Shown here: positions 2,894-54,209 of the stretch, one piece after another
Layout of the letters: each line of letters begins with the position of its first letter
How positions within the stretch are numbered: the first letter of the stretch is position 1
NCBI RefSeq assembly: GCF_006345805.1
Contig: NC_043025.1
Span: 1,674,001 to 1,738,000 of the forward strand
Source: Octopus sinensis
Lineage: Eukaryota
DNA: 64,000 nucleotides
Reading direction: 5' to 3'
Notes under the pieces: model-generated
The model's database searches: none
Told to the model about the DNA's origin: nothing
The model's input: only the letters and a program-made list of their open reading frames with translations
Position numbers and translations under genes: made by a program

Positions 2894-2929
<36 letters not shown>

Positions 2930-6094: not shown

Positions 6095-6157
6095 AGATAA
6101 CCGAAGAGATGGTGTTGTGGATTTCCACTTCGGCATCTGAAACTCAGAGTTTTATCT
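6095..6157 (+). ncRNA. Type I hammerhead-like ribozyme in 3' pLTR of PLE2
   Basis: Identical copy of 3512-3574. Confidence 0.6.
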
Positions 6158-10972: not shown

Positions 10973-11399
10973 CTGCAAAACATACAAAAATAATAAATAA
11001 TTGCAACAACATTAAGAATAAAATAAGAGATGCATATTGCAGATTGTAATAACTATAACAACAATATTATATCGGGAGAGAAATTTGAAAATAGGTCAGA
11101 AAAATGAAAAATATTAGACATTGTTCTCTATTTCTAGGAATGATGATTAAAAGATAACAAAGAAATTGAAATAAAGGATTGAAATTGAGAAAATTGTGTT
11201 TTAAAAGAATTGAAAATTACATTTGAGAGAATTTCTGGTAAAGAGATGGCAGGGAAAATGGTTGTGTGGGTAATAGCGTATGAGACCCTAAAGAATCAAT
11301 TAATATCACCCAAAGAGTCACATTATCTCATCCATCTATTCATATTCTCTACCCTCTATTCATAAAAGGGTTGTGGGGGTAGAGTCGCCAGGGAACCCC

Positions 11400-14080: not shown

Positions 14081-14152
14081 CAACAAATTCCCAGTCCCTC
14101 CCTAACTTCGTTGCCACCTTATTGAGATGCATCACCTCCAGTTTTACAGACT
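14081..14152 (-). CDS. Module A 72-nt exon: death domain N-terminal helices
   Basis: attttcag|..|gtgagc, phase 1/1. Encodes (E)SVKLEVMHLNKVATKLGRDWEFV(G), which joins in frame to RELGVP. It is not in the ORF track because it is too short. Confidence 0.82.
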
Positions 14153-17138: not shown

Positions 17139-17281
17139 CGAATCCACGTTTGTCAACTATAACTTGTTGACACTTGGGACAATTTTTAGGCTCATTTTCT
17201 GAACAGCAATCTTTGCATGTAACAGTGTGCTCACATGGTTGAAACGTCACTGTAGCTTCACTAGATTTACACAACAGACAT
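17139..17281 (-). CDS. Module A RING finger exon (C3HC4, MIB/IAP-like)
   Basis: caacag|a..g|gtaaga, phase 2/1. Encodes CLLC..QPCEHTVTCKDCC..NCPKCQQVIVDKRGF. Confidence 0.88.
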
Positions 17282-18623: not shown

Positions 18624-18835
18624 TGGTCAATCGTGACATTTTCAGTAAATACTTTCACCGGAGGTGGGAAAAGTCTTTTAATTTTTTCCTTTAAATTTGT
18701 ATCCTTGATAAGATCCAGCGGCATCACATTCTGTTCGTTTCTGTGGTAAAAATTGCTTCCATTGTCGGCCAGATAACAAGCCACTGCTAGACCTGAAGGC
18801 TTGCCTCCTTTGCTAAGCTGGAGCTTCTTGTAGTA
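18624..18835 (-). CDS. Module A 212-nt exon (last ankyrin-like repeat and linker)
   Basis: tttgtag|..ca|gtgagt, phase 0/2. Encodes YYKKLQLSKGGKPSGLAVACYLADNGSNFYHRNEQNVMPLDLIKDTNLKEKIKRLFPPPVKVFTENVTID(Q). Confidence 0.85.
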
Positions 18836-19344
18836 CTACAAATGGTGAAATATATGAAGGACAAGTGCATTATTACACAAATATAAACGAAATCATAGCA
18901 TCAAGTCAAATACAAGAAATATAATGGAAACTATGAATGTTAAAAATAACAGAGAACACACAGACTTATCCAAATATACCAACAATGTTTCCATAATTAA
19001 TAAAGAAACATCTTTGGATGATGAAGGTGAAGTAAAAAAGTAAGAATTGGTGTCACGGTTGAGGAAACACACCAACACATTCTATTTGATAAACTGTTGA
19101 AACTGTTAGTCTGACAGTCAATTCCAGTAATGGAGAGAGAAGGGCATTTGACTGCCAGAATAGCTTCTTCGTATCAAAGTGGACATTTCCACAACACAAA
19201 GATGACCATCAACTGTCTGAAATACAGTCACAAATCTGTAGAGACCGTTACCCATGTGGGAATCAGTGAGTTGCTATAAGTGCGCAAAATTTTACAGTAA
19301 ATACTGTTAGATCTACTGATGGTTAGATGTTGATGTATCTGTAT

Positions 19345-19399
<55 letters not shown>

Positions 19400-19504
19400 T
19401 GTGAATGAAAGTAAGTGAACAAATGACAGAGGGGCACTCAAACAATTCATTGGAAGTTACATGTGTGGATCAAAACAGTTTGGATCATTAAACTATTTTG
19501 ATCC

Positions 19505-19534
<30 letters not shown>

Positions 19535-19536
<2 letters not shown>

Positions 19537-19665
19537 TTATTATATAGAAGGAGCTTCTACAGGACTAGAACTGTTTCATTCAAGAGAAATCTTCAGGAAG
19601 CTCCTGAAGATTTCTCTTGAATGAAACAGTTCTAGTCCTGTAGAAGCTCCTTCTATATAATAAAT
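19535..19665. repeat. Perfect palindrome (64-bp arms, 3-nt spacer) containing a CUGAAGA..GAAAC..GUC hammerhead-like core, flanked by (TA)n
   Basis: atttattatatagaaggagcttctacagg..cttcagga-agc-tcctgaag..cctgtagaagctccttctatataataaat. Likely a PLE pLTR remnant with a 5' inversion. Confidence 0.85.
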
Positions 19666-19756
19666 TAATTTTACTCTACTATGTATTGAGTACCTTATTT
19701 ACTGTGGTTAACCCCGAATCAACCCGGGACCTACATATATATATATATATATATAT

Positions 19757-20068
19757 ATTCAAACATATAAGGGATGGCCATAATAGGACATCCGACTCAC
19801 TAGAAAGAGGAGTTAAACTCCAAACCACTAATATCGGGTAAACGTTTTTATTTCTCTTTCCATTTCAGAATTACAACTGTTAGTGTCTTGGAGTTTAACT
19901 GCTCTTTCTAGTGAGTCGGATGTCCTATTATGGCCATCCCTTATATGTTTGAATGTACATTATATAGTCTATTGACTATTTTTTCTTTCTCACTTGACCG
20001 CAGGTAGCGGATAATTTTTCTAGAATTTTTTGCTACCCTAAAATTTATTAATTAATAAAAATAAATGA

Positions 20069-20070
<2 letters not shown>
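19757..20070 (+). mobile_element. Diverged relative of the 492-bp ribozyme repeat, truncated, with a 5' inverted segment
   Basis: Arms 19757-19823 / 19888-19954. ttctagtgagtcggatgtcctattatggcc..gtctattgactatt..ttttgctaccct aligns with ttctagtgggtgaatggcctattatggcc..gtctatgactatt..ttttggcaccct in the 41-43 kb array. Confidence 0.7.
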
Positions 20071-20118
<48 letters not shown>

Positions 20119-20159
20119 ACATATATACTTATATATGTATATATATTATATACTCCATT

Positions 20160-20407
20160 ACTCTTTTACTCTTTTTACTCTTTTACTTGTTTCAGTCATT
20201 TGACTGCGGCCATGTTGGAGCACCGCCTTTAGTCGAGCAAATCGACACCTGGACTTTTTCTTTGTAAGCCCAGTACTTATTCTATCCGTCCCTTTTGCCG
20301 AACCGCTAAGTGACGGGGACGTAAACATACGAGCATCGGTTGTCAATCAATGCTAGGGGGACAAACACCGACAGACAAATCACACACACACACACACACA
20401 CACACAC

Positions 20408-20438
<31 letters not shown>

Positions 20439-20615
20439 TATATATATATATACATATATACGACAGGCTTCTTTCAGTTTCCGTCTACCAAATTCACTCA
20501 CAAGGCATTGGTCGGCCCTGGGCTATAGCAGAAGACACTTGCCCAAGATGTCAGGCAGTGGGACTGGACCCGGAACCATGTGGTTGGTTAGCAAGCTACT
20601 TACCACACAGCCACT
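20160..20615 (-). mobile_element. Two SINE copies separated by CA/TA microsatellite
   Basis: ttttactcttttacttgtttcagtcatttgactgcggcc.. and gacaggcttctttcagtttccgtctacc..ttaccacacagccact resemble abundant octopus SINEs. The second has a tRNA-like end on the minus strand. Family assignment is from recall. Confidence 0.6.
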
Positions 20616-20934
20616 ATGTATATATATATATGTATGTATGTATGTATGTATATATGTACGTACGTATGTATGTATATTGCTTTATTGTATCCATTCTCTA
20701 GTGTTCTAACATTCAATATTGTTATGACATGTCCACAAGAAGCCAGAGGATAAATGTTGTGTACAAGAAGTAAGACAGGGAGCTGTTTTTTCAGAATCCC
20801 TCATAGAATGAAATGAATGTATTTATCATGGCACTTGCATTCTAAAGGTTGTCATCATGTCTCTCTGTTTCTTTTTCTATCTCTTATAAATAAATCCACA
20901 CGTATATATATTTACAAATAATTCTAAAACTTAC

Positions 20935-21144
20935 CTTATCGAAGACAGTTAAGGATTCATCCTCAGAATGGAACTCCTCTTTCCTCACCGCAAGGTGAAG
21001 ACAATTGTTTCCGATATCATCGACCACATTTACGTCTGCTCCTTTAGAAATGAATTCCTGCATTATTCTGAAGTTGCCGCTAGAGACAGCTTGAAGAAAT
21101 GGTGTCATATTATCACAGTTTGTTATGTTCAATTTCACCGAATC
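20935..21144 (-). CDS. Module A first exon: two ankyrin repeats (210 nt)
   Basis: cacaaag|gat..aag|gtaagt, phase 0/0. Encodes DSVKLNITNCDNMTPFLQAVSSGNFRIMQEFISKGADVNVVDDIGNNCLHLAVRKEEFHSEDESLTVFDK. Confidence 0.88.
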
Positions 21145-22299
21145 CTTTGTGGAAGTAAAAATAGAGAATGAAAATTTACATGAAAACCAGGGTGGCTATC
21201 AATGTGTCATTACTGCCTTCTACTGGGTACTTGATCAAACCGATCACGTACATTTCATGTTTGTTAGTTAAGTTAGCCTTGCATAAGGTCCCTATATAAC
21301 TTGCTATGAGTGTGTTTAAGAGACATGATAAATCTATTTAGATGTCATAAACAGATTGGTTCAGCCTAATCTATGTTTGTCCCTCGCTATAGTAAGTTTT
21401 AAGGGAGTTAAACTGCACTGAGCACAAGATTAATGGATTAAGCTTGGGAAAGAACTATACGACTTTTTCTATACATTTGATGTTAATATATTAATAAGGG
21501 GCTCAGAATAGTTATATGTATATATATAGTTATATATATATATATACATATATGTCAAGAAAATCGCACAGATATACACATGGTGTGTGTGTCTTGTTAG
21601 TTCATGGGCTGGTTGCATTTTAGGTGTAAGAGAATATATTCTCAATGCGTCTGGCATTTGAAACACCTGAACGTAAGTCATAAGCAATCAAGGCAACTCA
21701 CACCATATGTATGTATGTATCTGTGGTATAGCTTTAAAGAGATTTGTTATGCCATGGTGGAATAATGTGAGAAGGTACAAAGTAAACTACAAAAGGAAAA
21801 GAGTGGACTGGGTGCCCCAGCACGAGTGCTTTTTCGTGGCACCAGCACCAGCAGGGTGACCAAATAACTTGTAAGACAAAGACTACTCAGCTGAAGGAAG
21901 GAATGAAACTGTGTACCAGGCAGGAGGTTTGACCATGATAGGTGGGAGTAGAGATAGTTCTCTTATTATAGAGGAAATACTTGGCTGCCCCAGTAGGACA
22001 AGGAAGGAAAAGGGAAGATGGGAGTTATGGAGAAAATAGAGAGACAGAATGAAAGAGGAAGAGAAATAGATGGTGGTGCAGATGCATTGGGGCCTACACT
22101 AGGTGAATGGTGGGAAAGTGGAGTATAAGTATTACAAATGAGATAGAGGTTGATGTAGCATAAGAGTGTGAGGGAAGATGATTAGAGATGGGGAGGAGGG
22201 GACTGTAGCAAATGATGGAGGGAGAAACTGGAGTGGCTGGGGAGGTGGGGGTATTGGTAGATAATGTGGGAGTATTGAGTGCAGATAGGCATGTGAGGT

Positions 22300-27405: not shown

Positions 27406-29293
27406 TAGTTTTATTTTTATAGCGTGCTTTCACTTCACTACCGAGCGCAGCTCTGTGTGCCTTGGGTATGTGCTGTGATTTGTTGTGATACTCTGATGGT
27501 TATTGTATGGAACGTGTTCTGCGTAGGATGTGTGCAGTGCCTAGTAGTGCAATTTTCTGTATGTTATATGTGTTTTTAAGTCCTGGTGTTTTTGTTATGT
27601 ATTTGTCTGAATACTTTTTTATCATGCCTAATGCACCTACTATGATAGGAATTGTTTCTGTTTTTAGATTCAACATTCTGGTTACCTCTATTTTCAGGTC
27701 TTTGTATTTTGAAAGTTTCTCCATTTCTTTTAGAGACACGTTGTCATCTGCCGGTATTGATACATCAATTAGAAAGCATTTTTTTCTTCATGATCTCTGA
27801 CAACTATATCTGGTCTGTTGGCCTTAATTTCTCTCTCTCTGTGTATCGGCATATCCCAGAGTATGGTTGCTTTCTCGATTACTCTCACCTTTTCTGGTGT
27901 GGGCCTATACCATCATTTTTCTGTTGTTATTCCATAATGTTGGCATAGCTTCCAGTGTATGTAGGTTCCAACTCTGTCATGTCTGTGAATATATTCCTTC
28001 TTAGCCAGGACTGGGCAGCCAGAGATAATATGATTTATTGTTTCTTGTCCATCTCCACATATTCTGCAGTTACTTGTTATATTTCTTTTCATTACATGTT
28101 TTTGGTAATTTCTGGTGGGGAGGCTTTGGTCTTGTGCTGCAATTAAAATCCTTCTGAACTGCTTTGAGTCCTGAGCTTCTCAACCATTGCTGGGATTTTT
28201 CTTTGTCTATTTCTTTTGCGTTTAGTTTAGTCCAGTATTTACCATGAAGGGGCTTTTCTTGCCATCGTTTTATCATGGTTCGTTGCTGTTCTATTTTTAG
28301 TTTGGATTTCATTTGTTTTATAGCTTTTGTTGTTTCTTCATATTCTTCCCCTTCTTCTTCATATTTATTAGGTGGTATGATTTCTTATTTGCATTTGTCA
28401 GCTTCCTTAAATACTGGGAACAGTTTTTTGTTTTGCTCGTGTTTTGCAGCTATTTCTATCACTTTTCCTTGCTTCTGAAGTAGATATTTTTGCAGTCGTA
28501 TGGTGGTTATTTTATAGTAGTTTTCCAGCTGTATAAGGCCTCTACCACCTTCTATACGTTGTATATATAGTCTTTCTATGTCAGATTCTGGGTGATGCAT
28601 CCTAGATCCTGTCATTATTATCTTGTTTTCCTATCTATTTTGGTCAGTTCATTTAGTGTCCAGTTAAGCATAATGTAGCTGTAACTTATAACTGGGACGG
28701 CTAAAGTGTTAATACCTATTATCTTGTATTTAGTATTGAGCTCTGTTATTAGTATTGATCTAACTCGTCTATAATATTCTTTTTTTATTTTCTCTTTTAT
28801 TTGTGTGTGTTGTGTCTTATCTAGTTCATGGATTCCTAAGTATTTGTAAGTTTGGCTTTGGTCTAATTCTTTTATTTCATTGGTTTTATCTAGTGTGATG
28901 TTGCTACTCTTAACTAGCTTTCCTCTTTTCAGGGTTACTTTGGCGCATTTTTCTAATCCAAATTTCATATCTATTTCTTTGGTAAACCCATGAACTGTCT
29001 TTAATAGTGTTTCCAGCTGTTTGTCATTTGCAGCGTATAGTTTTAGGTCATCCATATATAAAAGGTGGCTGATCGTTTTGCCGTAACATTTATATCCGCA
29101 TCCAGTTCTATTTAGCATATCAGATAGAGGTGACAGTGCCAAGCAGAAAAGGAGTGGAGAGAGCGTGTCTCCCAGGAATATTCCTCTTCTAATGGGGATG
29201 GCTTTGGTTTTCATGAGTCCCTCTTTTGTTTGGAGCTGTAGCACTGTTTGCCATTTATTGATAGAATGCCCTATGAATTTTATAATTGTTGGT
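27403..29293 (-). mobile_element. 5'-truncated R4/Dong-like LINE (RT + CCHC knuckle + restriction-like endonuclease) inserted in (AAT)n
   Basis: RT motifs RGIFLGDTLSPLLFCL and HLLYMDDLKLY; CRICG..ETINHIISGC; NRPDI..LIDVSIPAD..EKLSKYKDL; IQKIALLGTAHILRR. (ATT)n lies on both flanks (27334-27402, 29293-29431). It is frameshifted. Confidence 0.85.
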
Positions 29294-30129: not shown

Positions 30130-33100
30130 AGGGTACTGTCAATTTGGATAGGTGCTCCCTCAAATGGGTCAACATTTGGCAGACTCTCCTCCTCACCATT
30201 CATTCTCCACATTCAGCAGTATTTCATAATGGCATCTCCAAGCCTCTTTCTTTGCAGACTCATTAAATGCAGACACATTTCTCTCCTAAGACATCACAAT
30301 TTTCTTTCACACACTGTTTTGCAATCCAAAACTCTTTAGTTCTTTGATCCTTATGATGCTGAACATTGGCAAACTTCTTCTTTTCTGCATCTCCCTTGGC
30401 TCTATATACCTGAATCCTAGCTTCACCGTTTGGCTATCTGATACAGTTCTCTGCTGCCCCACACTTCCTGGCCTTTGAAGCCTGTTTCTTTGCTCTAACG
30501 GCCATGTTTACAGTATTGCTCCACCACCACGTTACCCTAAGTCTGGATGGCACTTTGCATCAGCCACAGATTTGGTCTGTTGCGCTCAGCAAGCTGTCTC
30601 GCAGGAATTCCCGGTTGCCCTCTGTGTCACAAGTTTGTAACTTCACCTTCTCATCAAATTTCTCAAATAGGATGTTCCTAAATCTCTGACCATATGAAGG
30701 GTCGTTAAGCTTCCAAATCCTTCTTTTCCAGATTGGACTGCTTCTTGGCATCCAATCTAAAATGCGCTAATGACTAGTCTATGCTGGGCCGGGGGGAGTG
30801 CATTCTTCACCTGGGAGAGTCATTGTATTTAAGAGCAAACGGGAATTCCTGCCTGACAGCTTGCTGAGTGCAACAGACCAAATCTGTGGCTGATGCAAAG
30901 TGCCATCCAGACTTAGGGTAACGTGGTGGTGGAGCAATACTGTAAACATGGCCGTTAGAGCAAAGAAACAGGCTTCAAAGGCCAGGAAGTGTGGGGCAGC
31001 AGAGAACTGTATCAGATAGCCAAACGGTGAAGCTAGGATTCGGGTATATAGAGAGTCATCTGATTGATAAATTATCCGTTAGCTGGCTGGCTTCCCGAAG
31101 TTGGTGTTCCAGATCAAAAGGTTATTTGCATCACAGAACTCCAGTAGCCTTGTTCCCTCTTTGTTTCGGGAACCAATTCCATGGCCCCCGTGAACACTAT
31201 GGAAGATACCAGATTGCTATCCACATGCCAATTGAAATCCTCAGCCACGAAGATGAGATCAATGTCACTCGTCTTTGAGGTAGTCTACAGAAGAATATCA
31301 TAAATGTGATCCTTCTATTCATTTGGTAGGACTGCTTGTGGGGCCTAGGCAGAGATAATTGTAGCTATCCCATTCTGAAAGACTAGCCTGAGCTTAAGTA
31401 CTCTTTCGCACACCCTGACTGCCTCTATGAACTTATCTACCCATTTCTCTACAGGAGGTATGCCCACAACCCCTATTCCATCACTGTTACCTTCCCAGAG
31501 GAGTTTATATCTATGTGTGTTGCCTTTGAAGACCCTGACTGAAACTTCTATTGTTCTTTGCTTCACTATTACACTTTGCTGCTTTTTTTGATTTTCTTGT
31601 GGTGAAGCTAGCCATTTCTTCCATTTCTTGTTCGTGATGTGTCCAAGTCTGCAAAGAAAGCGGCTTGGAGATGCCATTATGAAGGACTGCTGAACGTGGA
31701 GAATGAATGGAAGGAGGAGAGTCTGTCAAATATTGACTCAGTTGAGGGACCATCAATCCCAAATCAACAGTACACTGGTAGATAAAGCAACTAAAGTTAT
31801 GAAGACAGGGAAAGCTGCTCCCCCACCAGGTATCGTTGCTGAGATGCTTAAAACATCTGACAGTGTGGGTTATAGCGTAGTCTCTTGTATTGTAATACAA
31901 ATGGTTCATGAAGGAATCATACCCAATGACTGGTGTAGCAACACCATAGTCAACTGCTACAAAGGTAAAGGTGAGGTTTTAGGTAGAAATAACCACAAGG
32001 GTATCACATTGTTGGATAAGGGGTTGAAAGTTACAGAGAGAGTCATAGCCCAACTAATTAGGAAGAAAGTTAGTCTAGATAAGATGCAGTTTGGCTTTGT
32101 GCCATGGAGAAGCGCCACTGATGCTATATTTCTGGTAAGACAACTGCAGGAGAAATATTTAGCCAAAGATAAACCTCTGTGCTTGGGTTTTGTTGATTTT
32201 AAGAAAGCCATCGACACCGTCCCTTGATTCCTCATCTAGTGGTCAACAAGGAAACAAGAGATAGATGAGTGGTTGGTGAGAGCCGCACACACCTTGTACA
32301 CGGATACTACCAGTAAGATGAGGGTGGACAACGGGTACAGTGAAGAATTGAGGGCACAGGTAGGGGTTAACCAAAGATCAGTACTTAGCCCCCTCTTGTT
32401 CATCATAGTCCCCAGGCAATAACAGAGGAATTCAAGACAGGCTGCCTCTGGGAGCTTCTCTATGATGAAGACCTTGCTCTTAAAGATGAATCACTACCTG
32501 AATTAGAGAAGTTCCTGGTATAGAATCAAAGGACCTTAGAGTTAAGCTAGAAAACAACCAACGTCATAGTAAGTAGGAGAGCAGAAAAATCACAAATCCC
32601 TTCAAGTAGATGGCCCTATTCAATCTGTAGAAAAGGTGCAGGTAGAAACCTCATAAGATGAACCCAGGGTAAGCTTTGAACACATAGAAAGTGCAGCAAC
32701 ATCAGAGGAAGGTAGATTAAAAGAAGGTGCACAGGTACAATAAACACTGAAAATGCACAGAATATTGACTCCATCAACTGCTAGGGGAACAAGCTAGAGG
32801 TTGTAGATAGCTTCCATTATCTAGACAACCAAGTTAGTAGTGGAGGTGGATGCTAAATGAGTGTAGCTGTGAGAATAAGATTAGGCTGGGCAAAGTTCAG
32901 AGAGCTCTTACCCCTGCTGGAAATAAAGGGCTTCTCTCTCAGAGTGAAAGGCAGATTATTTAATGCCTGTGTATGAACAGCCATGCTGCATGGCAGTGAA
33001 ATATGGTCTGTGACAGCCGGGGACATGCATATGCTTGAGAGAAAGGAAGCCAGTATGCTTCACTGGATGTGCAATGTCAGTGTGCATACAAGACAGAGTG

Positions 33101-39973: not shown

Positions 39974-40183
39974 CTTATCGAAGACGGTTAAGGATTCATC
40001 CTCAGAATGGAACTCCTCTTTCCTCACCGCAAGGTGAAGACAATTGTTTCCGTTACCATCGACCACATTTACGTCTGCTCCTTTAGAAATGAATTCCTGC
40101 ATTATTCTGAAGTTGCCGCAAGAGACAGCTTGAAGAAATGGTGTCATATTATCACAGTTTGTTATGTTCAATTTCACTGAATC
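39974..40183 (-). CDS. Module B first exon: two ankyrin repeats (210 nt)
   Basis: caaag|gat..aag|gtaagt, phase 0/0. Differs from 20935-21144 at 3 amino acids. Confidence 0.88.
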
Positions 40184-41058
40184 CTTTGTCGAAGTAAAAA
40201 TAGAGAATGAAAATTTACATGAAAACCAGGGTGTCATTACTGCCTTCTACTGGGTACTTGATCAAACCGATCACGTACATTTCATGTTTGTCAGTAAAGT
40301 TAGCCTTGCATAAGGTCCCTCTATAACTTATGGCTGTGTTTAAGAGACATGATAAATCTATTTAGATGTCATAAACAGATTGGTTCAGCCTAATCTATGT
40401 TTGTCCCTCGCTATAGTAAGTTTTAAGGGAGTTAAACTGCACTGAGCACAAGATTAATGGATTAAGCTTGGGAAAAAAGAACTATACGACTTTTTCTATA
40501 CATTTGATGTTAATATATTAATAAGGGGCTCAGAATAGTTATATGTATATATATAGTTATATATATTCATAATTAATCAATATAGGGTGCCAAAAAAAAT
40601 TTTGTAGAATTTTTTTGCCACCAGCGGCCTAGTGGGAAAAAATTAAATAGTCATAGACCATTTTTAAGTTCAAAATCAACAATCAAGGAACGGCCATAAT
40701 AGGCCATTCACCCACTAGAAATAACAGCCAAAGCTTCAACCGCAAATAAAAGTCAATTCCGTAAACAGGAGAAAATTTAAAAAACATTTACCCTGTAATT
40801 TCTTATACGGTGCACCGTTTCGTCTGCTGTTTAATGGTAAACTAACCTGATTAAATTAAATCAAGCCAATCTTCCATAGTCACCCTATATTGATTAATTA
40901 TGAATTTTCTGGTTAATTCCGTAATGGAATCGACGGCTTATATTTATTTGCTGCCGATAAATTTGGCGCGAGTGCGATGATTTGAAAATTTTAGGTCAGA
41001 TATTAACTTGGCAGGGTCGGAAATGCCTCGTGTAAATATCTGTTCCGACTTGTGGCTA

Positions 41059-41163
41059 TTTCTTACTGAAGAATCTGAGGGCCTATGGAAGATTGGCTTG
41101 ATTTAATTTAATCAGGTTAGTTTACCATTAAACAGCAGACGAAACGGTGCACCGTATAAGAAA
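41059..41163 (+). ncRNA. Type I hammerhead ribozyme, array unit 1
   Basis: Stem I tttctta/taagaaa, CUGAAGA, stem II tctg/caga (A-C at the base, large insert), GAAA, palindromic stem III acggtgcaccgt, GUA cleavage after 41156. Confidence 0.8.
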
Positions 41164-41550
41164 TTACAGGGTAAATGTTTTTTAAATTTTCTCCTGTTTA
41201 CGGAATTGACTTTTATTTGCGGTTGAAGCTTTGGCTGTTATTTCTAGTGGGTGAATGGCCTATTATGGCCGTTCCTTGATTGTTGATGTTGAACTTAAAA
41301 ATGGTCTATGACTATTTAATTTTTTCCCACTAGGCCGCTGGTGGCAAAAAAATTCTACAAAATTTTTTTTGGCACCCTATATTGATTAATTATGAATTTT
41401 CTGGTTAATTCCGTAATGGAATCGACGGCTTATATTTATTTGCTGCCGATAAATTTGGCGCGAGTGCGATGATTTGAAAATTTTAGGTCAGATATTAACT
41501 TGGCAGGGTCGGAAATGCCTCGTGTAAATATCTGTTCCGACTTGTGGCTA

Positions 41551-41655
41551 TTTCTTACTGAAGAATCTGAGAGCCTATGGAAGATTGGCTTGATTTAATT
41601 TAATCAGGTTAGTTTACCATTAAACAGCAGACGAAACGGTGCACCGTATAAGAAA
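41551..41655 (+). ncRNA. Type I hammerhead ribozyme, array unit 2
   Basis: Same fold. Cleavage after 41648. Confidence 0.8.
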
Positions 41656-42041
41656 TTACAGGGTAAATGTTTTTTAAATTTTCTCCTGTTTACGGAATTG
41701 ACTTTTATTTGCGGTTGAAGCTTTGGCTGTTATTTCTAGTGGTGAATGGCCTATTATGGCCGTTCCTTGATTGTTGATGTTGAACTTAAAAATGGTCTAT
41801 GACTATTTAATTTTTTCCCACTAGGCCGCTGGTGGCAAAAAAATTCTACAAAATTTTTTTTGGCACCCTATATTGATTAATTATGAATTTTCTGGTTAAT
41901 TCCGTAATGGAATCGACGGCTTATATTTATTTGCTGCCGATAAATTTGGCGCGAGTGCGATGATTTGAAAATTTTAGGTCAGATATTAACTTGGCAGGGT
42001 CGGAAATGCCTCGTGTAAATATCTGTTCCGACTTGTGGCTA

Positions 42042-42146
42042 TTTCTTACTGAAGAATCTGAGGGCCTATGGAAGATTGGCTTGATTTAATTTAATCAGGT
42101 TAGTTTACCATTAAACAGCAGACGAAACGGTGCACCGTATAAGAAA
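42042..42146 (+). ncRNA. Type I hammerhead ribozyme, array unit 3
   Basis: Same fold. Cleavage after 42139. Confidence 0.8.
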
Positions 42147-42532
42147 TTACAGGGTAAATGTTTTTTAAATTTTCTCCTGTTTACGGAATTGACTTTTATT
42201 TGCGGTTGAAGCTTTGGCTGTTATTTCTAGTGGGTGAATGGCCTATTATGGCCGTTCCTTGATTGTTGATGTTGAACTTAAAAATGGTCTATGACTATTT
42301 AATTTTTTCCCACTAGGCCGCTGGTGGCAAAAAAATTCTACAAAATTTTTTTTGGCACCCTATATTGATTAATTATGAATTTTCTGGTTAATTCCGTAAT
42401 GGAATCGACGGCTTATATTTATTTGCTGCCGATAAATTTGGCGCGAGTGCGATGATTTGAAAATTTTAGGTCAGATATTAACTTGGCAGGGTCGGAAATG
42501 CTCGTGTAAATATCTGTTCCGACTTGTGGCTA

Positions 42533-42637
42533 TTTCTTACTGAAGAATCTGAGAGCCTATGGAAGATTGGCTTGATTTAATTTAATCAGGTTAGTTTACC
42601 ATTAAACAGCAGACGAAACGGTGCACCGTATAAGAAA
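42533..42637 (+). ncRNA. Type I hammerhead ribozyme, array unit 4
   Basis: Same fold. Cleavage after 42630. Confidence 0.8.
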
Positions 42638-43023
42638 TTACAGGGTAAATGTTTTTTAAATTTTCTCCTGTTTACGGAATTGACTTTTATTTGCGGTTGA
42701 AGCTTTGGCTGTTATTTCTAGTGGGTGAATGGCCTATTATGGCCGTTCCTTGATTGTTGATGTTGAACTTAAAAATGGTCTATGACTATTTAATTTTTTC
42801 CCACTAGGCCGCTGGTGGCAAAAAAATTCTACAAAATTTTTTTTGGCACCCTATATTGATTAATTATGAATTTTCTGGTTAATTCCGTAATGGAATCGAC
42901 GGCTTATATTTATTTGCTGCCGATAAATTGGCGCGAGTGCGATGATTTGAAAATTTTAGGTCAGATATTAACTTGGCAGGGTCGGAAATGCCTCGTGTAA
43001 ATATCTGTTCCGACTTGTGGCTA

Positions 43024-43128
43024 TTTCTTACTGAAGAATCTGAGGGCCTATGGAAGATTGGCTTGATTTAATTTAATCAGGTTAGTTTACCATTAAACAG
43101 CAGACGAAACGGTGCACCGTATAAGAAA
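43024..43128 (+). ncRNA. Type I hammerhead ribozyme, array unit 5
   Basis: Same fold. Cleavage after 43121. Confidence 0.8.
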
Positions 43129-45299
43129 TTACAGGGTAAATGTTTTTTAAATTTTCTCCTGTTTACGGAATTGACATTTATTTGCGGTTGAAGCTTTGGC
43201 TGTTATTTCTAGTGGGTGAATGGCCTATTATGGCCGTTCCTTGATTGTTGATATAGTTATATATATATATATACATATATGTCAAGAAAATCGCACAGAT
43301 ATACACATGGTGTGTGTGTCTTGTTAGTTCATGGGCTGGTTGCATTTTTAGGTGTAAGAGAATATATTCTCAATGCGTCTCGCGTTTGAAACACCTGAAC
43401 GTAAGTCATAAGCAATCAAGGCAACTCACACCATATGTACGTATGTATCTGTGGTATAGCTTTAAAGAGATTTGTTATGCCATGGTGGAATAATGTGAGA
43501 AGGTACAAAGTAAACTACAAAAGGAAAAGAGTGGACTGGGTGCCCCAGCACGAGTGCTTTTTCTTGGCACCAGCACCAGCAGGGTGACCAAATAACTTGT
43601 AAGACAAAGACTTCTCAGCTGAGGGAAAGAATGAAATTGAGGGAAGTGGCTGTGTACCAGGCAGGAGGTTTGACCATGATAGGTGGGAGTAGAGATAGTT
43701 CTCTTATTATAGAGGAAATACTTGGCTGCCCCAGTAGGACAAGGAAGGAAAAGGGAAGATGGGAGTTATGGAGAAAATAGAGAGACAGAATGAAAGAGGA
43801 AGAGAAATAGATGGTGGTGCAGATGCATTGCGGCCTACACTAGGTGAATGGTGGGAAAGTGGAGTATAAGTATTACAAATGAGATAGAGGTTGATGTAGC
43901 ATAAGAGTGTGAGGGAAGATGATTAGAGATGGGGAGGAGGGGACTGTAGCAAATGATGGAGGGAGAAACTGGAGTGGCTGGGGAGGTGGGGGTATTGGTA
44001 GATAATGTGGGAGTATTGAGTGCAGATAGGCATGTGAGGTAGAGTGGAGGGGCCTGCAGCAGGTGATGATCACGGGTGGTGGGATGGGAAGTTGTTGGGA
44101 GGATGGGTCGTGAAGGTGTTTGGAGATTGTATGTAAGATAATTTCTCATAACTTTGTTCCACATCTTCCTGGATCAATCTCGCCCACAGTTTCGTTCCAC
44201 AATAAGAGATCAGCGATTTTTATGCAACCGTCCTCATTCATACACATCACATGGCCGTGCAAACGCAGTCTTCTCTCTTGCACACAACGTCTGAGACGTC
44301 TTATACCCAAGTTTTCTCTTAAGTCTTTTACAGTTTGTAGTATACATGCACATACATACACACATACATACATACATACACACATACATACATACATGCA
44401 TGCATACATACATACATACATACTTACATGAATACATACATACATACATACATACATACATACATGCATACATGTATACACATTTATATACACAAACACA
44501 CATACAAATGATATCTCTTAAGGTATCGTAGCCAGTTGAAAACAGCGAGAGAAGTTTTAATTACAAGAGAACAAATTAATTCGTTTTAAATATGCAAACA
44601 ATTCTTCAAATTAGTTTCTGACATTAATATATTCATCACTCATCAAATCTCAACAATTCTTCATTTTATTATATTTTTCATTGATGGAGAAGAACAATTG
44701 CTTGTTTGGTTCCTGTTCTTCAACTGGGTTTGGTACCAGATGGCATTCCATCTCAGCTATAATGAGATGGTTTTAACATACAGGTTGACAATTGTAATAT
44801 ATTTACCTATGCTGGTGTATTTAATGGATTTGAGGAGAAATATATTCATGTGAGGGTTTGTGTATTTATGTGTGTGTGTGTGATATATATACATATATAT
44901 ATCATCATTATCATCCTCATATCATCATTGTTTAACATCCGTTTTCTATGCTGCTAGCATGGTTTGGACATTTCGACTGGGGTCTGGGAAGCCAGGAGAC
45001 TGCACCAGGCTCCATTCTGGTCTGGCAGTGTTTCTACAACTAATACCCTTCCTAATGCCAACCATTCCGTGAGTGTAGTGGGTCCTACGCATGTAGGCTA
45101 GCAACGGTCATGATCGAATGGTGATTTCCACCTTGACCGGCACGGAGCCAGTCAAGGTGGCACTGGCATCGGCCATGTTCAGAGAGTGCTTTTTGCATGC
45201 CACCGGCACGGGTATCGCAACTACAATTTCCATTTGATTTTCACTTTGATGTTGATGTACTTGACTCAACAGGTCTCCTCAACACAGCAAGTCACCCTA

Positions 45300-47000
45300 C
45301 GATCCAAGGTACTTCTAAATGGGCTGCGGCTGGTTACACGAAACTGGTGTAGGATACAGCCATGAATTCATTTTATTTGCTGGGTATTCACAGTCATAGG
45401 ATATCTCCAGAGGTCCCGGTCTTTCGTTATAGCCTCTGTGAGGCCCAACGTACGAAGGTCATGCTTGACCACCTCATCCTATGTCTTCCTGGGTCTACCT
45501 CTACCCCAGATTCCTTCAACTGTTTGGGCGTGGCATTTCTCTCAAGGCACTTATATTCTGTCGTGTGTGCACACTGACATTACACATCCAGCGGATCATG
45601 CTAGCTTCATTTCTTTCGAGCCTACACATGTCCTCCGCAATCATGGTCCATGTTTCACTGCCGTGAAGCATGGCAGTTCCCACACATGCGTTGTACTATC
45701 TACCTTTCACTCTGATTGAGAGGCCCTTTGTCACCCGTAGGGGTAGAGGCTTTCTAAACTTTGCCCAGGCTCGTCTTACTCTAGTGGTGACATTCTCAGA
45801 GCATCAACCCCCACTTCTAACGTGGTCACTTAGGTAGCGGTAGCTATAAACTACATCTAGTGTCTCCCCCTGGAGTGTGATAGAATCTGTTTTCTGAGCA
45901 TATGTGGTGTTTATTGCACCTGTGCATCTGCTGCACACGAAAGCTATCTTCCCGGTTAATCTTCCTTTGATGTTGCTGCACCTCTTATATGTCCATAGCT
46001 TACACAGGGTACGTCTTATGGAGCTTCTACCTACACCTTTTCTACAGATCGAGCAGGGCCACCTACCTGAAGAGGTGCGTGGTGGGTTTCCCTTACTACT
46101 TGCTAGAACTCTAAGGATTTTTGATTCTAAACCTTGCTTCCACACCTGAAATTTCTTCCCTAGTTCTGGTAGTGATTCTGCTATTAAGGCCAGGTCATCA
46201 CCATTCTTCACTATAGTCACTGCTAATACTAACCTTACTAACACTCTCTCTGTATAGGGCCTGTACAGCCCTTATTAGCCATTCGTCAATCTCCAGTTTC
46301 CTCATCGCCCACCAGATAAGGCTTTCTCCAAGTCCACAAAATCTAAGTATAGCAGTTTATCTTTGGCTAGGTATTTCACCTGCAGTTGTCAAACCAGGAA
46401 TATAGCATCATTGGTGCTTCTACCCAGCACAAAACCAAACTGCTTCTCATCTAAGAAGACTCTCTCCCTGATGAGATGGGCTGATCTCCGTGACCTGATC
46501 CAGCAGTTTGATACCCCTGTAGTTATTTCTATCTAGAGCATCACCTTTACCCTTGTAGCAGTTGACTATGGTGCTGCTACGCCAGTCGTTGGGTATGTCT
46601 CCATTATGAACTACCTGGTTTACAATGCGGGTGACTAGGCCATAGCCCACACCACCAGATATTTTAAGCATCTCAGCAATGATTCCTGATGGATCGGGGC
46701 TTTTCGTGGCTCCATACCCTTAATTGCTTGATCTACTAGGGAGCTGTCTATTCGAATAGCTGGTCCCTCTAAGGGTCGACATTTCGCAGGCTTTTCTTCT
46801 CCCATTCATTCTCCACGTTCAGCAGTCTTTCATAATGGCTTCTCGAAGACTCTTTCTTTTCCGAATCGTTAAAAGCAAGTGCACCATCATCCATGCGGAC
46901 GCATTTCTCTCCTGTGACATCACAATTTTCTCTCACCCACTGTCTTGCAATCCGAAGTACCTCAGTTCTTTGGTCCTCACGTCGCTGAATATTGGCAAAC
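45300..47000 (-). mobile_element. Degenerate RTE-clade LINE fragment
   Basis: Motifs DDLALIAESLPEL; SGRWPCSICRKGVGR; MLKISG..YKGKGDALDRNNYRGIKLLDQV. Many stops. Confidence 0.82.
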
Positions 47001-47897: not shown

Positions 47898-47934
47898 CTG
47901 GGATAGCATCAATGCCACGACATCATAGTCTTGC
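47898..47934 (-). CDS. 37-nt exon linking the giant ankyrin exon to the 3' modules
   Basis: Long pyrimidine tract ..tttttag|g caa gac tat gat gtc gtg gca ttg atg cta tcc cag|gttagt, phase 2/0. It completes GDTPLHRAVV(R)QDYDVVALMLSQ|DSVKLN. Confidence 0.8.
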
Positions 47935-48792
47935 CTAAAAATTATAGAAAGAAGAAAGAAACATATAGAAAATACGAAAATCATAGAGGTTGAGATAATT
48001 AATAATTATTAGGTCATTAATTAGTGAAAACAGATGTAATGAGCTACCTAAAACCTGTTTACATCAATAATTATATAGACACATATAAATACAATCGATA
48101 TATACACTCTAACCAGTTGATTATTCATATATACACATCTGAATAAACACCACAATGTTTTCTATGGTACAACGAACAACAAGTTGACCTCAGCAGGATT
48201 TGAACTCATAATGCAAAGTGTTGTAAATACATACCAACAGTAATAAGAAACAGGAAGAGGATAGAATCCCTGAATATTACTATTTGATATTAAATGAACC
48301 TCTAGATATCACTGGTATAGATTATATTGATCCCAGAGTGACAATAGATACTCTGGCATTATTTGAACTTGGAGCATAAAATAAACAAAAGTAAATCCTG
48401 TAAGGGGGTGGTTCTGTCATTTAACCTAGGGTCAGAGGAAAAAGGAACATTATAAGAGGGGGAGGGAGAGAGAGAGAGTATGAGAGATAGAGAAAGAGAG
48501 AGTAATTGGGGGTTTTACGTGGAATCAAACAAAGAAGACGAAGAATTTGAATCTGAAATGTTGTGGTATGGGGGATGAGGTGGAATAATGGATTTAGTCA
48601 GGTGACAAGAACAAGAATAACAATAATTATGGGGACGATTAATTAATGCTGTAGATCACAGTATCATTACACTATGAGAGAGAGTAGAAGGTTGACCCAT
48701 GGTGGGAATATGATATCATTGAGTCAGTAAAACAAAACATTATTGAAAGGTAAGAAAGAGATTTGGATATTCCAGATCCAATGAGGACTTAC

Positions 48793-51700
48793 CTGACAAC
48801 TGCCCGATGTAGCGGTGTGTCACCAGATTTATTTACCATACATACGCCAATGCCACACTTCTTCAGTAGATGTTTAACAATTTCTGTGTGTCCATAAGCA
48901 CTAGCGAAATGTAATGGCGTTTCACCATCATTATTCGCCGCATTTACATTAATGCTAGACTGCTTCAGTAGATGTCCAACAGTTTCTAGGTCTCCCTTCA
49001 TACATGCCCGATGTAGGGGAGTGTTACCATATTTGTTTACCATACGGACGTCAATGTCGGACTTATTCAACAGATGTTTAACAATTTCTGTGTGTCCACA
49101 AGCACTAGCGAAATGTAATGGCGTTTCACCATCATTATTCGCCGCATTTACATTAATGCTAGACTGCTTCAGTAGATGTTCAACAGTCGCTAGGTGCCCC
49201 TTCATAGAGGCGAAGTGTAGTGGTGTGTCCCGATCATTATCCTCAGCATTTACATCAACATCAGCCTGCTTCAGTAGATGTTCAACAATCTCTAGGTGTC
49301 CACGAGAGCAAGCCAGATATAGAGGTGTGCCACCGTGCTTATTCTTTACGCTGACGACCATACCAGATCGCTGCAGTAGAAGTTTAAAAGTCTCTGGCTG
49401 TCCATTTATACATGCCCGATGTAAAGCTGTGTTGCCGTATTTATTTACCATACGGACGTCAATGTCAGACTTCTTCAACAGATGTTTAACAATTTCTGTG
49501 TGTCCATCAGCACTGGCCAGATGTAATGGCGTTTCACCATCATTATTCGCCGCATTTACATTAATGCTAGACTGATTCAGAAGATTTTCAACAGTCGCTA
49601 GGTGTCCTTTCATAGAGGCGAGATGTAGTGGTGTGTCCCGATCATGATCCTCAGCATTTATATCAGTATCAAATGTCTTCAACAGATGTTTAACAATTTC
49701 TGTGTGTCCATAAGCACTAGCGAAATGTAATGGCGTTTCACCATCATTATTCGCCGCATTTACGTTAATGCTAGACTGCTTCAGTAGATGTTCAACAGTT
49801 GCTAGGTGTCCATTCATAGAGGCGAGATGTAGTGGTGTGTTCCGATCGTTATCCTCAGCATTTACATCAATATCAGACTGCTTCAGTAGATGTTCAACAA
49901 TCTCTAGGTGTCCACGAGCGCAAGCCAGATATAGAGGTGTGCCACCGTGCTTATTCTTTACGCTGACGACCATTCCAGATTGTTGCAGTAGCAGCTCAAC
50001 AACCTGTAGGTGTCCACGAGCGCAAGCCAGTGACAGAGGTGTGTTACCGTCCTTATTCTTTACGCTGACGACCATTTCAGATCGCTGCAGTAGAAGTTTA
50101 AAAGTCTCTATCTGTCCATTTATACATGCCCGATGTAAAGCTGTGTTGCCGTATTTATTTACCATACGGACGTCAATGTCAGACTTCTTCAACAGATGTA
50201 TAACAATTTCTGTGTGTCCATCAGCACTAGCGAAAAGTAATGGCGTTTCACCATCATTATCCGCCGTATTTACGTTAATGCTAGACTTCTTCAGTAGAAG
50301 TTTAACAGTTTCTGTGTGACCATCAGCAATGGCCAGATGTAATGGCGTTTCACCATCATTATTCGCGGCATTTACGTTAATGCTAGACTGCTTCAGTAGA
50401 TGTTCAACAGTCGCTAGGTGTCCGTTAATAGAGGCGAGATGTAGTGGTGTGTCCCGATCATGATCCTCAGCATTTATATCAGTATCAAATGTCTTCAACA
50501 GATGTTTAACAATTTCTGTGTGTCCATAAGCACTAGCGAAATGTAATGGCGTTTCACCATCATTATTCGCCGCATTTACGTTAATGCTAGACTGCTTCAG
50601 TAGATGTTCAACAGTTGCTAGGTGTCCATTCATAGAGGCGAGATGTAGTGGTGTGTTCCGATCGTTATCCTCAGCATTTACATCAATATCAGACTGCTTC
50701 AGTAGATGTTCAACAATCTCTAGGTGTCCACGAGCGCAAGCCAGATATAGAGGTGTGCCACCGTGCTTATTCTTTACGCTGACGACCATTCCAGATTGTT
50801 GCAGTAGCAGCTCAACAACCTGTAGGTGTCCACGAGCGCAAGCCAGTGACAGAGGTGTGTTACCGTCCTTATTCTTTACGCTGACGACCATTTCAGATCG
50901 CTGCAGTAGAAGTTTAAAAGTCTCTATCTGTCCATTTATACATGCCCGATGTAAAGCTGTGTTGCCGTATTTATTTACCATACGGACGTCAATGTCAGAC
51001 TTCTTCAACAGATGTATAACAATTTCTGTGTGTCCATCAGCACTAGCGAAAAGTAATGGCGTTTCACCATCATTATCCGCCGTATTTACGTTAATGCTAG
51101 ACTTCTTCAGTAGAAGTTTAACAATTTCTGTGTGACCATCAGCACTGGCCAGATGTAATGGCGTTTCACCATCATTATTCACCGCATTTACGTTAATGCT
51201 AGACTGCTTCAGTAGATGTTCAACAGTCGCTAGGTGTCCGTTAATAGAGGCGAGATGTAGTGGTGTGTCCTGATAATTATCCCCAGAATTTATATCAGTA
51301 TCAGACCGCTGCAGTAGATGTTCAACAGTTTTTGTGTGACCATCAGCACTGGCCAGATGTAATAGCGTTTCACCACCATTATTCGCCGCATTTATGTTAA
51401 TGCTAGACTGCTTCAGTAGATGTTCAACAGTTTCTAGGTGTCCCTTCATATATGCCAGATGTAGGGTAGTGTTACCGTATTTATTTTCCATACGGACGTC
51501 AATGTCAGACTTATTCAACAGATGTTTAACAGCCTCTGTGTGACCACCAGCATTGGCCAGATGTAATGGCGTTTCACCATCATTATTTGCCGCATTTACG
51601 TTAATGCCAGACTTCTTCAGTAGATGTTTAACAATTTCTGTGTGTCCATCATCACTGGCCAGATGTAATGGCGTTTCACCATCATTATTTGCCGCATTTA

Positions 51701-52721
51701 CGTTAATGCCAGACTTCTTCAGTAGATGTTTAACAATTTCTGTGTGTCCATTATCACTGGCCAGATGTAATGGCGTTTCACCATCATTATTTGCCGCATT
51801 TACGTTAATGCTAGACTGCTTCAGTAGATGTTTAACAGTTTCTAGGTGTCCCTTCATAGAGGCGAGATGTAGTGGTGTGTCCCGATCCTTATCCTCAGCA
51901 TTTACATCAACATCAGACTGCTTCAGTAGATGTTCAACAGTCGCTAGGTGTCCCTTCATAGAGGCGAGATGTAGTGGTGTGTTCCGATCATTATCCTCAG
52001 CATTTACATCAACATCAGACTGCTTCAGTAGATGTTCAACAACCTCTAGGTGTCCACAAGCGGATGCCAGAGATAGAGGTGTGTCACCGTTCTTATTCTT
52101 TACGCTGACGACCATTCCAGATTGTTGCAGTAGCAGCTCTACAACCTCTAGGTGTCCACGAGCGCAAGCCAGTGACAGAGGTGTGTTACCGTCCTTATTC
52201 TTTACGCTGACGACCATTTCATATCGCTGCAGTAGAAGTTTAAAAGTCTCTATCTGTCCATTTATACATGTCCGATGTAAAGCTGTGTTGCCGTATTTAT
52301 TTACCATACGGACGTCAATGTCAGACTTCTTCAACAGATGTTTAACAATTTCTGTGTGTCCACGAGCACTGGCCAGATGTAATGGCGTTTCACCATCATT
52401 ATTTGCCGCATTTACGTTAATGCTAGACTGCTTCAGTAGATGTTCAACAGTTTCTAGGTGTCCCTTCATAGAGGCGAGATGTAGTGGTGTGTCCCGATCA
52501 TTATTCTCAGCATTTATATCAGTATCAACTTTCTTCAACAGATGTTTAACAATTTCTGTGTGTCCATCAGCACTAGCGAAAAGTAATGGCGTTTCACCAT
52601 CATTATTCGCCGTATTTACGTTAATGCCAGACTTCTTCAGTAGATGTCCAACAACGTGTGTGTGTCCACGAGCACAGGCCAGGTGGAGTGGTGTATCACC
52701 ATCGTTATTTTGATGATTTAC
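48793..52721 (-). CDS. Giant ankyrin-repeat exon (3,929 nt; 38 complete 34-aa repeats plus the start of a 39th)
   Basis: tttttcag|gta..gtc ag|gtaagt, phase 0/2. Uninterrupted frame with repeated G.TPLHLAS..GH.E.V..LL motifs at 102-nt period. Contains an 816-nt (8-repeat) internal duplication. Confidence 0.96.
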
Positions 52722-54209
52722 CTGAAAAATCAATAAAAAACACTACAAATAGTGGCTAGAAGGGGACGGGTAGAACCCTTAACGCATATTCAGAAACAGA
52801 ATGTGAGGAATAAGGTGGAATGATGATGGGCGGCCTTGAGTAAGTAAATGAGCTTTGTATTGAGTTTATATTGTATTTACACACACACACAAACACACAC
52901 ACATTCTCTTGCTTTCAATGTTGTAGCAAGCAAGTATGTCTAGATTATGGGAAAGAAAATGAAGAGAGTGTGTTCTGGGGATTAATCTAAAACTCATCAA
53001 AGATTTTTTATTTTATTCCATCAATATAATTATCATCTACACCCTCAAAAATGAAGATTTTTCCCTAAAGAATATGAATCATTGGAAAGTTTTGAGGAAA
53101 CAAAATCTTGGGGCATTAAACTATAAATAGATTAACATGCTGTTTATTTTCGTAAAATAGTGTAAGTTGTCTTTAAAAATATGAAAGTACATTTCAATAG
53201 AAACTCGAAGTAACGACAGTGACATCTTGTAATGTCCTGTAAATGGTGTATGTGACTTACAAACGTATCCAATACACAAACGGGCAGACATTTAGTGTAA
53301 CATAAAAGTCGCATGTATAATTTATATAGGATGAAAAGAGTCACATTAACGAGAAAACATGACAGTCATGGATGACCGAAATGAGTTTTGTGAATAATTT
53401 TTCACAATCTCCAAATTTGTTTCGCTCCACACGGCCATGAAAACACGATGTAAATAAAACATTATTAATCCCGTTCTGTTACATAATTTTCTTTTTGGCG
53501 AACATCGATCGCCCTTCTTTAATTTGTGTCCAGATGCTGTCAGTGTTTGGATACAGAAATCTTAGACAATGGTTGACAACTTCATGAGTAGACAAGTTGC
53601 CGGGACCCACATAAAAAAGCCTATCCATTTGTTATGTGAAGGAATGAAGGGTGACATCCAAAGCAAGGAGGGGCGAGTGATGAAATTCTAATGTTTCACA
53701 CTGATCAATTCCGGTTTCTATAGCAACATATTTTAAGTTTTTGACGGACAATTTGTTTTATGTAGGATGTCATCGCTACCTAATATCATGGAGAGTCCTA
53801 GAAAATTCAGACCCCTACATACACAGGGGCAAGTGTTGTAGACTGTGCATAGCCAAACGGGCGAGGATATTAAAGGACTCCCTCGACCTGGGGACACCCT
53901 TAACTCCAGAATAGAAGACTTCTCACCCAGTTGGCACTTCAGGAGATTCCTGCTGGCACCGTGGGATCCATAAGAAAACAGAGTCGATTACGAATAACAA
54001 CCAAAGGAAGACAATTCCTGTTGCTGACATAGGGCAACGATGCCTTTTCCTTCTCCATTTTCTAAGGAGGACACATACTACAGGGGCCTTGTGCCAACAA
54101 GCTTCGAGGTTTGATGATACGCTGTCAAGCTAAACGCTTTATGGACGTGAAACCCAGGGTAATCTCATAGACCGGCCTTATATATCTTTATATACATATG
54201 TGTGTGCGT

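Follow-up and report, generated by a model that had tools for sequence, protein, structure and literature searches.

A tandem array of hammerhead-like motifs in a probable intron of Octopus sinensis: a probable retrozyme-type insertion made by Penelope-like machinery

The stretch of DNA analyzed here, the window, is 64,000 nucleotides of the Octopus sinensis genome (assembly GCF_006345805.1, contig NC_043025.1, positions 1,674,001 to 1,738,000; positions below are counted from its first letter). It contains two genes for MIB2-like proteins, two Penelope-like elements (PLEs) and, in what is probably a gene intron, an insertion of about 2.7 kb (40565–43252) composed of tandem units, each with a hammerhead-like motif. 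This insertion is interpreted below as a single copy of a non-coding element of the type known as metazoan non-LTR (non-long-terminal-repeat) retrozymes, probably inserted by PLE machinery. Its parts are the following, with unit positions numbered from the predicted cleavage site of the motif:

40553–40566, no strand: left copy of the target-site duplication, ATAGTTATATATAT, within a (TA)n-rich tract.
40565–40879, minus strand: inverted, 5′-truncated partial copy of 315 nt (unit positions 419–492, then 1–241).
40880, no strand: filler base T, a single nucleotide at the joint of the inverted and direct parts.
40881–43252, plus strand: direct tandem array of 4.8 units, from unit position 217 at its start to terminus T1 (...CCTTGATTGTTGAT) at its end.
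43253–43266, no strand: right copy of the target-site duplication, ATAGTTATATATAT, 14 bp.

Tandem Repeats Finder described the direct array with a period of 491, 4.8 copies, 99% matches and a score of 4702. The unit is 491–492 bp long and has 36% G+C. The inverted copy is the reverse complement of 41083–41397, with 314 of 315 bases in agreement; its outer end is the terminus T2 (...TTAATTATGAAT), and it holds a 110-nt ‘tail’ (40565–40674) plus the 3′ half of one hammerhead. The sole mismatch, at 40674, is the base right after T1 (T in the orientation of the element, G at 41288). The last 2 nt of the left target duplication are ambiguous with the end of the element. Concerning coding capacity, the longest stop-to-stop frame of the unit is 52 aa, and no homologue of its three-frame translation was found among 5.8 billion proteins. 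The unit is therefore non-coding and, like non-LTR retrozymes, has no LTR, primer-binding site or polypurine tract, although no search was aimed at the latter two. An initial annotation of the same DNA had described a non-coding array of five hammerhead motifs at about 492-nt spacing, with a 5′ inverted partial copy and a target duplication, and in these respects it agrees with the present results.

The four full units of the array differ in a total of four columns. Three of these are losses of a single nucleotide within short homopolymer runs, each found in one unit (at 41742, 42501 and 42928: GGG to GG, CC to C and TTT to TT), and they could be consensus errors of the assembly instead of mutations. 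The fourth is a G/A site in the internal loop of helix II of the motif (GAGGGCC vs GAGAGCC), which is the only substitution among the five motifs. It lies at 41080, 41572, 42063, 42554 and 43045 and reads G-A-G-A-G along the array, i.e. with a higher-order period of two units. This alternation argues that the template of the array was not a monomeric RNA circle, and rolling-circle copying from such a circle was thus disfavoured; the pattern would be explained if the template had been a multimeric transcript or a dimeric circle, or if a block of two units had been duplicated at a later time.

The hammerhead-like motifs are located as follows:

41058–41164, plus strand: motif 1, predicted cleavage after 41156.
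41550–41656, plus strand: motif 2, with A at the variant site 41572, predicted cleavage after 41648.
42041–42147, plus strand: motif 3, predicted cleavage after 42139.
42532–42638, plus strand: motif 4, with A at the variant site 42554, predicted cleavage after 42630.
43023–43129, plus strand: motif 5, predicted cleavage after 43121.

Exact searches with the 105-nt segment UUUCUUA-CUGAAGA-...-GAAA-CGGUGCACCGU-A-UAAGAAA gave five matches, all on the plus strand, starting at 41059, 41551, 42042, 42533 and 43024 (spacing 492, 491, 491 and 491 nt). Cleavage after the GUA site of each motif would release monomers of 492, 491, 491 and 491 nt. The invariant core is complete in every motif (C3 U4 G5 A6 A7 G8 A9 and G12 A13 A14), and the A15.1-U16.1 pair and A17, a non-G base as required of H17, are also present. 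When the segment 41055–41167 was folded with RNAfold, the hammerhead three-way junction was both the minimum-free-energy and the centroid structure (−30.9 kcal/mol, z = −3.9). Helix I consists of 8 bp, AUUUCUUA/UAAGAAAU, is open-ended and has a GCU bulge beyond those 8 bp. Helix II begins with UCUG/CAGA (4 bp), followed by an internal loop and a long imperfect hairpin, so that A9 and G12 are separated by 76 nt; this loop and the bulge of helix I would be candidate partners for a loop-loop tertiary contact. Helix III is ACGG-UGCA-CCGU, with 4 bp and a UGCA loop, and forms a 12-nt palindrome. Compared to the initial annotation, which had claimed a full type I hammerhead fold, the core bases and the three helices stand, and so does the three-way junction; stem I has 8 bp instead of the 7 bp proposed, and the two sub-hairpins drawn in stem II give way, in the minimum-free-energy fold, to a single irregular hairpin with a length of about 76 nt. 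Taken on its sequence, the motif appears to be a hammerhead-derived type I motif with a complete catalytic core and an A·C mispair at positions 10.1/11.1.

The likelihood of such a motif arising by chance was estimated with a relaxed descriptor of our own, which tolerates a mismatch at 10.1/11.1 and a helix II of up to 120 nt. Over the 64-kb window it returned the five motif sites and one artefact, against a random-sequence expectation of 0.035 hits per 64 kb. The artefact (19596–19558, minus strand) was rejected, as it belongs to a perfect palindrome with 64-bp arms that makes stems trivially. Among 20,000 dinucleotide-shuffled units, six satisfied the relaxed descriptor and none reached the quality of the observed motif. 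A search with relaxed helix III found no canonical or minimal hammerhead elsewhere in the window, the PLE region included.

The folding of longer transcripts was also considered. The 492-nt monomer of the plus strand folded at −140.8 kcal/mol (z = −5.0), with its ends joined through helix I, while the minus strand was less structured (z = −3.4). In a transcript with one hammerhead and 200-nt flanks, helices II and III were formed with a probability of about 0.7. When a transcript contains two complete hammerheads, the 12-nt palindromes of adjacent units are predicted to pair with a probability of about 1.0, giving an inter-unit helix III of 12 bp, and the trans pairings of helix I needed for a double hammerhead reached 0.2–0.3. 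In the literature, hammerheads of metazoans and PLEs are described as typically having a palindromic helix III and acting as dimers.

Concerning the ends of the insertion, T1 corresponds to unit position 131, where the direct array stops, and T2 to unit position 241, where the inverted copy stops. They are 110 nt apart, and the intervening 110 nt are found at the left end only, as a one-sided tail. Two further features bear on these termini:

43218–43252, plus strand: conserved hairpin GAAUGGCC-UAUUAU-GGCCGUUC plus 13 nt to T1, present in every unit.
19757–20068, plus strand: diverged relative of the element, without the hammerhead part, with 72% identity over unit positions 79–236.

The hairpin (8 bp with a UAUUAU loop) recurs at 41253, 41744, 42236 and 42727 and, in the inverted copy, at 40688–40709. 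The relative is again an inverted plus direct pair with (TA)n on both sides, so that the flanks of both array and relative are of the (TA)n type. Its inverted arm ends at the homologue of T1 (...GTTTGAAT, 19757) and its direct part at the homologue of T2 (...AAATGAAT, about 20068). Thus, the two insertions, which are independent, have their four termini at two homologous sites. The block immediately upstream of T1 is the best-conserved stretch between the array unit and the relative; within the hairpin, the relative has one pair changed from A-U to G-C, one from U-G to U-A, and one broken. It is proposed that this hairpin region is the recognition and start region for reverse transcription. 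The relative itself contains a pair of 81-nt inverted arms, 94% complementary, separated by a 48-nt spacer, and lies in an intron of the first MIB2-like paralogue.

This anatomy can be compared with that of PLEs, whose hammerhead-bearing pseudo-LTRs are known (Cervera & de la Peña 2014, PMC4209133; Craig et al. 2021, PMC8557442; Frangieh et al. 2024, PMC11167929). PLE insertions described in the literature take the form of partial tandems, often with an inverted 5′-truncated copy on the 5′ side; they carry a tail of 30–40 bp at one end only and prefer microsatellites, (TA)n included (PMC8557442). A purified PLE protein cuts and extends both DNA strands, with preference for AT-rich targets, and reverse transcription begins at two internal RNA sites, the tail being the stretch between them. 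In vitro, unprocessed RNA is its main substrate. The array shares with PLEs the partial tandem with an inverted 5′-truncated copy, the AT-rich/(TA)n target and the one-sided tail bounded by two start sites. With the hammerheads of PLE pseudo-LTRs it shares a palindromic helix III suited to dimers and a larger-than-usual helix II. In the anole PLE the start sites lie about 90 nt past the cut site, and the array is similarly arranged, with the hammerhead followed by the start sites about 130 nt later. Unlike PLEs, the array is without a reverse transcriptase or endonuclease gene; its tail is of 110 nt vs 30–40 bp in PLEs, and the G10.1-C11.1 pair conserved in PLE hammerheads is not kept.

The two PLEs of the window are themselves informative:

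587–3493: PLE A, an inverted pair of 3′ parts, with arms 587–1656 and 2466–3493 and (TA)n on both sides.
3506–6194: PLE B, with 106-nt direct terminal repeats (3506–3611 and 6089–6194, 99% identical) and (TA)n on both sides.

The left arm of PLE A is 57 nt longer than the right one, which leaves a one-sided tail as in the array; an open reading frame (ORF) of this element (1425–1820, minus strand) gives a weak GIY-YIG match. PLE B has ORFs at 3651–4316 and 4450–5886, the latter with the C-terminal part of the reverse transcriptase and GIY-YIG. Homologues of this second ORF number more than 300, with lengths of about 700 aa; the closest is 50% identical and some have GIY-YIG. The GIY-YIG match of the ORF itself is weak. 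The insertion style of the array is that of the local PLEs. Neither the relaxed descriptor nor the search with relaxed helix III found a canonical hammerhead in them. A hammerhead can be traced in the terminal repeat of PLE B if C is allowed at position 4 and one additional U ahead of G12; this candidate was rejected, with a folding z of −1.3 and a negative Rfam result. The proposal that the array was mobilised by PLEs like those nearby is thus borne out as to the insertion style, which is shared, and not as to the sequence, which is not; these particular PLEs are at most candidate mobilisers.

What is directly observed (how the insertion is built, where it ends, and a motif that is improbable by chance) is best explained if the array is one insertion of a non-autonomous, non-coding element of the metazoan non-LTR retrozyme type, made by PLE machinery, a reading to which we assign a probability of roughly 0.7. 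By analogy with PLEs, we infer that the insertion took place by target-primed reverse transcription from both nicked strands. In such a process, a PLE endonuclease/reverse transcriptase would cut the two strands of the (TA)n tract 14 bp apart. The DNA ends would each prime reverse transcription at a fixed internal site of the RNA, either T1 (...CCUUGAUUGUUGAU) or T2 (...UUAAUUAUGAAU), 110 nt apart and downstream of the conserved hairpin. The first cDNA would have copied 4.8 units from a multimeric or circular template and the second one 315 nt in the opposite orientation, both being finally joined through the one filler base at 40880. If the plus strand were transcribed, weak action of the motifs, or action as double hammerheads between adjacent units, would be most likely, and the ends of the released RNAs of about 491 nt would be held by helix I for ligation into circles.

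Several observations weigh against this interpretation, or against the activity of the ribozyme that it includes. In every motif (5/5), A·C takes the place of the G10.1-C11.1 pair with which helix II should begin, as the initial annotation had already pointed out as a caveat for activity. The G10.1-C11.1 pair is highly conserved in PLE hammerheads and is the most conserved one after 15.1-16.1, the best-tolerated mispair reported at this position being U·U. Given the A·C, ribozyme activity may be low or absent. No Rfam model of a hammerhead or other ribozyme matched on either strand, at the gathering score in the 64-kb window or at E ≤ 10 in 40400–43400, so that on this point, as on the 10.1-11.1 pair, the full hammerhead claimed earlier is not supported; the 76-nt helix II is likely the cause of the miss. 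In the transcript with a single hammerhead and 200-nt flanks, helix I had a probability of only about 0.15 at equilibrium. No diverged copy of the hammerhead part was found in exact look-ups (with the ORFs of the array and its junctions), in the translation search or in pattern scans of metagenomes, and there is accordingly no covariation support for helices I–III. Comparison of the unit with the two PLEs of the window by blastn revealed no similarity, and the argument from two termini has just two insertions behind it. PLE hammerhead mutants insert normally in vitro, and therefore the motif need not function for the element to spread. Furthermore, the ribozyme strand is antisense to the MIB2-like host gene, so that host transcription would yield the non-ribozyme strand, and no promoter was identified for the ribozyme strand.

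In a first alternative, the element and its insertion are the same, the hammerhead is a dead or near-dead relic, and the template of the array was a linear, multimeric transcript that had not been cleaved, with no monomeric circular RNA. It would account for the replacement of the most conserved stem pair by A·C in every copy, the lack of an Rfam match and the G-A-G-A-G pattern, impossible from a monomeric circle as template; it also fits the predominant use of unprocessed RNA by PLEs in vitro and the normal insertion of hammerhead mutants. However, all the invariant core bases and the three helices are intact in a young, near-identical array, cleavage persists in retrozyme hammerheads whose helix II has a mismatch at its base, and is better in their dimers, and the alternation of G and A is also possible from a dimeric circle or by later duplication of a two-unit block. 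In addition, an A+·C wobble retains the purine N7 at position 10.1. It seems reasonable to take this alternative seriously while considering it doubtful. The opposite proposal is just as tentative: as an active hammerhead that tolerates A·C and a helix II of 76 nt, the motif would work as a double one through its 12-nt palindromic helix III and would produce circular RNAs of about 491 nt in octopus tissues.

A second alternative is that the array is a run of pseudo-LTRs of an autonomous PLE, the coding part of which is absent here, with no separate non-autonomous family. The pseudo-LTRs of PLEs do bear the hammerheads, retrozymes group with them, and PLE insertions are heavily 5′-truncated. 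Nevertheless, coding sequence has left no trace in the 4.8 complete units of the array, its unit is dissimilar to both PLEs of the window, and the relative at 19.8 kb is likewise non-coding; we regard this alternative as unlikely. It is still less probable that assembly produced the unit count, or the minor differences among units, as an artefact: the three single-unit differences are 1-nt homopolymer deletions, typical of consensus errors, but both junctions with the unique flanks and the joint of the inverted and direct parts are specific sequences. Finally, an ordinary satellite or local tandem duplication resembling a hammerhead by chance is very improbable, for although the relaxed descriptor does give false positives, such as the perfect palindrome at 19535–19665, and many chance matches to it are expected genome-wide, no shuffled unit reached the observed quality, and the target duplication, the inverted copy and the termini common to a diverged relative indicate retrotransposition and not slippage.

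The preferred reading, an insertion of retrozyme type made by PLE machinery, places the array next to systems already described. Metazoan non-LTR retrozymes (Cervera & de la Peña 2020, PMC7229834; Li, Clavereau & Pollet 2026, preprint 10.64898/2026.07.22.740005) have an established presence among cnidarians, mussels and insects as well as in many vertebrates, and their origin from PLEs has been argued. The array has in common with them a tandem unit of a few hundred bp, each with a type I hammerhead motif, a G+C content below 50% (36%), a target duplication of more than 4 bp (14 bp), no coding capacity, a strongly self-paired monomer and a link with PLEs. The octopus unit, with 491 bp, is above the 170–400 nt of PMC7229834 and inside the 51–972 bp of the preprint. 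The differences are in the motif, with a helix II of about 76 nt vs about 4 bp plus loop, a helix III of 4 bp vs the 1–2 bp typical of metazoan hammerheads, and A·C in the place of G10.1-C11.1. Naiad elements contain ‘HHR_half_core’ motifs with 35–50 nt spacers, and PLE (Naiad) remnants occur in cephalopods (Craig et al. 2021, PMC8557442). The octopus motif resembles these half-cores in that the halves of its core are split by a long spacer and are missed by standard descriptors, and both show a bias to (TA)n; it differs in having a spacer of 76 nt and a fold that can be drawn with three helices, whereas the half-cores have no demonstrated stems. Tandem type I hammerheads are also found in the amphibian satellite 2 and the axolotl retrozyme, those of amphibians cleaving poorly alone and better as dimers. 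One hammerhead of the axolotl retrozyme, with U·U at the base of helix II, shows precisely this behaviour, with weak cleavage alone and better cleavage as a dimer. The mispair of the octopus is A·C instead of U·U, its helix III is stable enough to fold alone, and the phylum is different.

No report of cephalopod hammerheads or retrozymes was found in the literature searched, in agreement with the earlier suggestion of a family undescribed in cephalopods. As judged from its sequence, then, the array would be a new, atypical family within the known class of metazoan non-LTR retrozymes and not a new kind of system. The features that make it atypical are the very long helix II, the A·C at 10.1/11.1 and the 110-nt tail. 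Recognition of retrozymes as a source of abundant small circular RNAs in animals is recent, and how they depend on PLEs is still under study. The locus offers a clean, young example in which the target duplication, both start sites, the one-sided tail and the cDNA joint can be read base by base. Since the insertion anatomy matches the results obtained in vitro with one PLE protein, the connection between retrozymes and PLEs is made here by anatomy and not by co-occurrence. The array would extend the retrozyme class to cephalopods and, if the variant were active, it would be the first cephalopod retrozyme. In that case, the current hammerhead models and descriptors would be missing a subclass with long helix II, perhaps identical to the Naiad ‘half-core’ motifs, and the accepted hammerhead consensus would be widened, which matters for genome-wide searches of ribozymes.

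Concerning the host gene, the window contains two tandem MIB2-like paralogues on the minus strand (10758–21150 and 25300–47909), with ankyrin, RING and death-domain exons. All the homologues (7/7) of the C-terminal exons are Octopus MIB2-like proteins, and the exons 21108–20935, 18835–18623 and 10973–10758 are 100% identical to one MIB2-like isoform of O. sinensis, which agrees with the cephalopod host initially supposed. In the second paralogue, exons were recognized on the minus strand at 40189–39974, 37910–37698, 36873–36715 and 25479–25300. Two of its exons bracket the array:

47898–47909, minus strand: putative first coding exon ATG CTA TCC CAG (MLSQ), with the donor GTTAGT, at the 5′ boundary of the intron.
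39974–40189, minus strand: second coding exon (ankyrin repeat), preceded by a splice acceptor, at the 3′ boundary of the intron.

The exon at 40189 matches an O. vulgaris protein that begins with MLSQ from residue 5 onward. The sequence ATGCTATCCCAG followed by GTTAGT (47909–47898) is the only match to MLSQ with an adjoining GT on the minus strand of the whole window, with a chance expectation of about 0.02 (computed by hand). Because this unique exon and the acceptor at 40189 bracket the array, the latter probably sits in intron 1 (about 47897–40190) of the paralogue, as the host intron of the initial annotation would have it. Orthologous Octopus loci were looked up through two proteins, and none is on record.

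Other elements of the window may be mentioned briefly. The perfect palindrome at 19535–19665 (64-bp arms, 3-nt centre, (TA)n flanks) gives sub-threshold matches to microRNA precursors of Rfam and may be a foldback or MITE-like (miniature inverted-repeat transposable element) sequence. Another inverted repeat, at 7420–7889, has 150-nt arms, 96% complementary, with a 170-nt spacer; its arms contain CTGAAGA closely followed by GAAA, without hammerhead stems. Fragments of other reverse-transcriptase retroelements, with RVT_1 matches and LINE-like motifs, lie in introns at 28618–29244 (minus strand), 31703–32227 (plus strand) and 45804–46671 (minus strand). Just upstream of the MIB2-like paralogue there is an uninterrupted ORF of 1314 aa (48789–52733, minus strand), composed almost entirely of ankyrin repeats and with long internal near-duplications.

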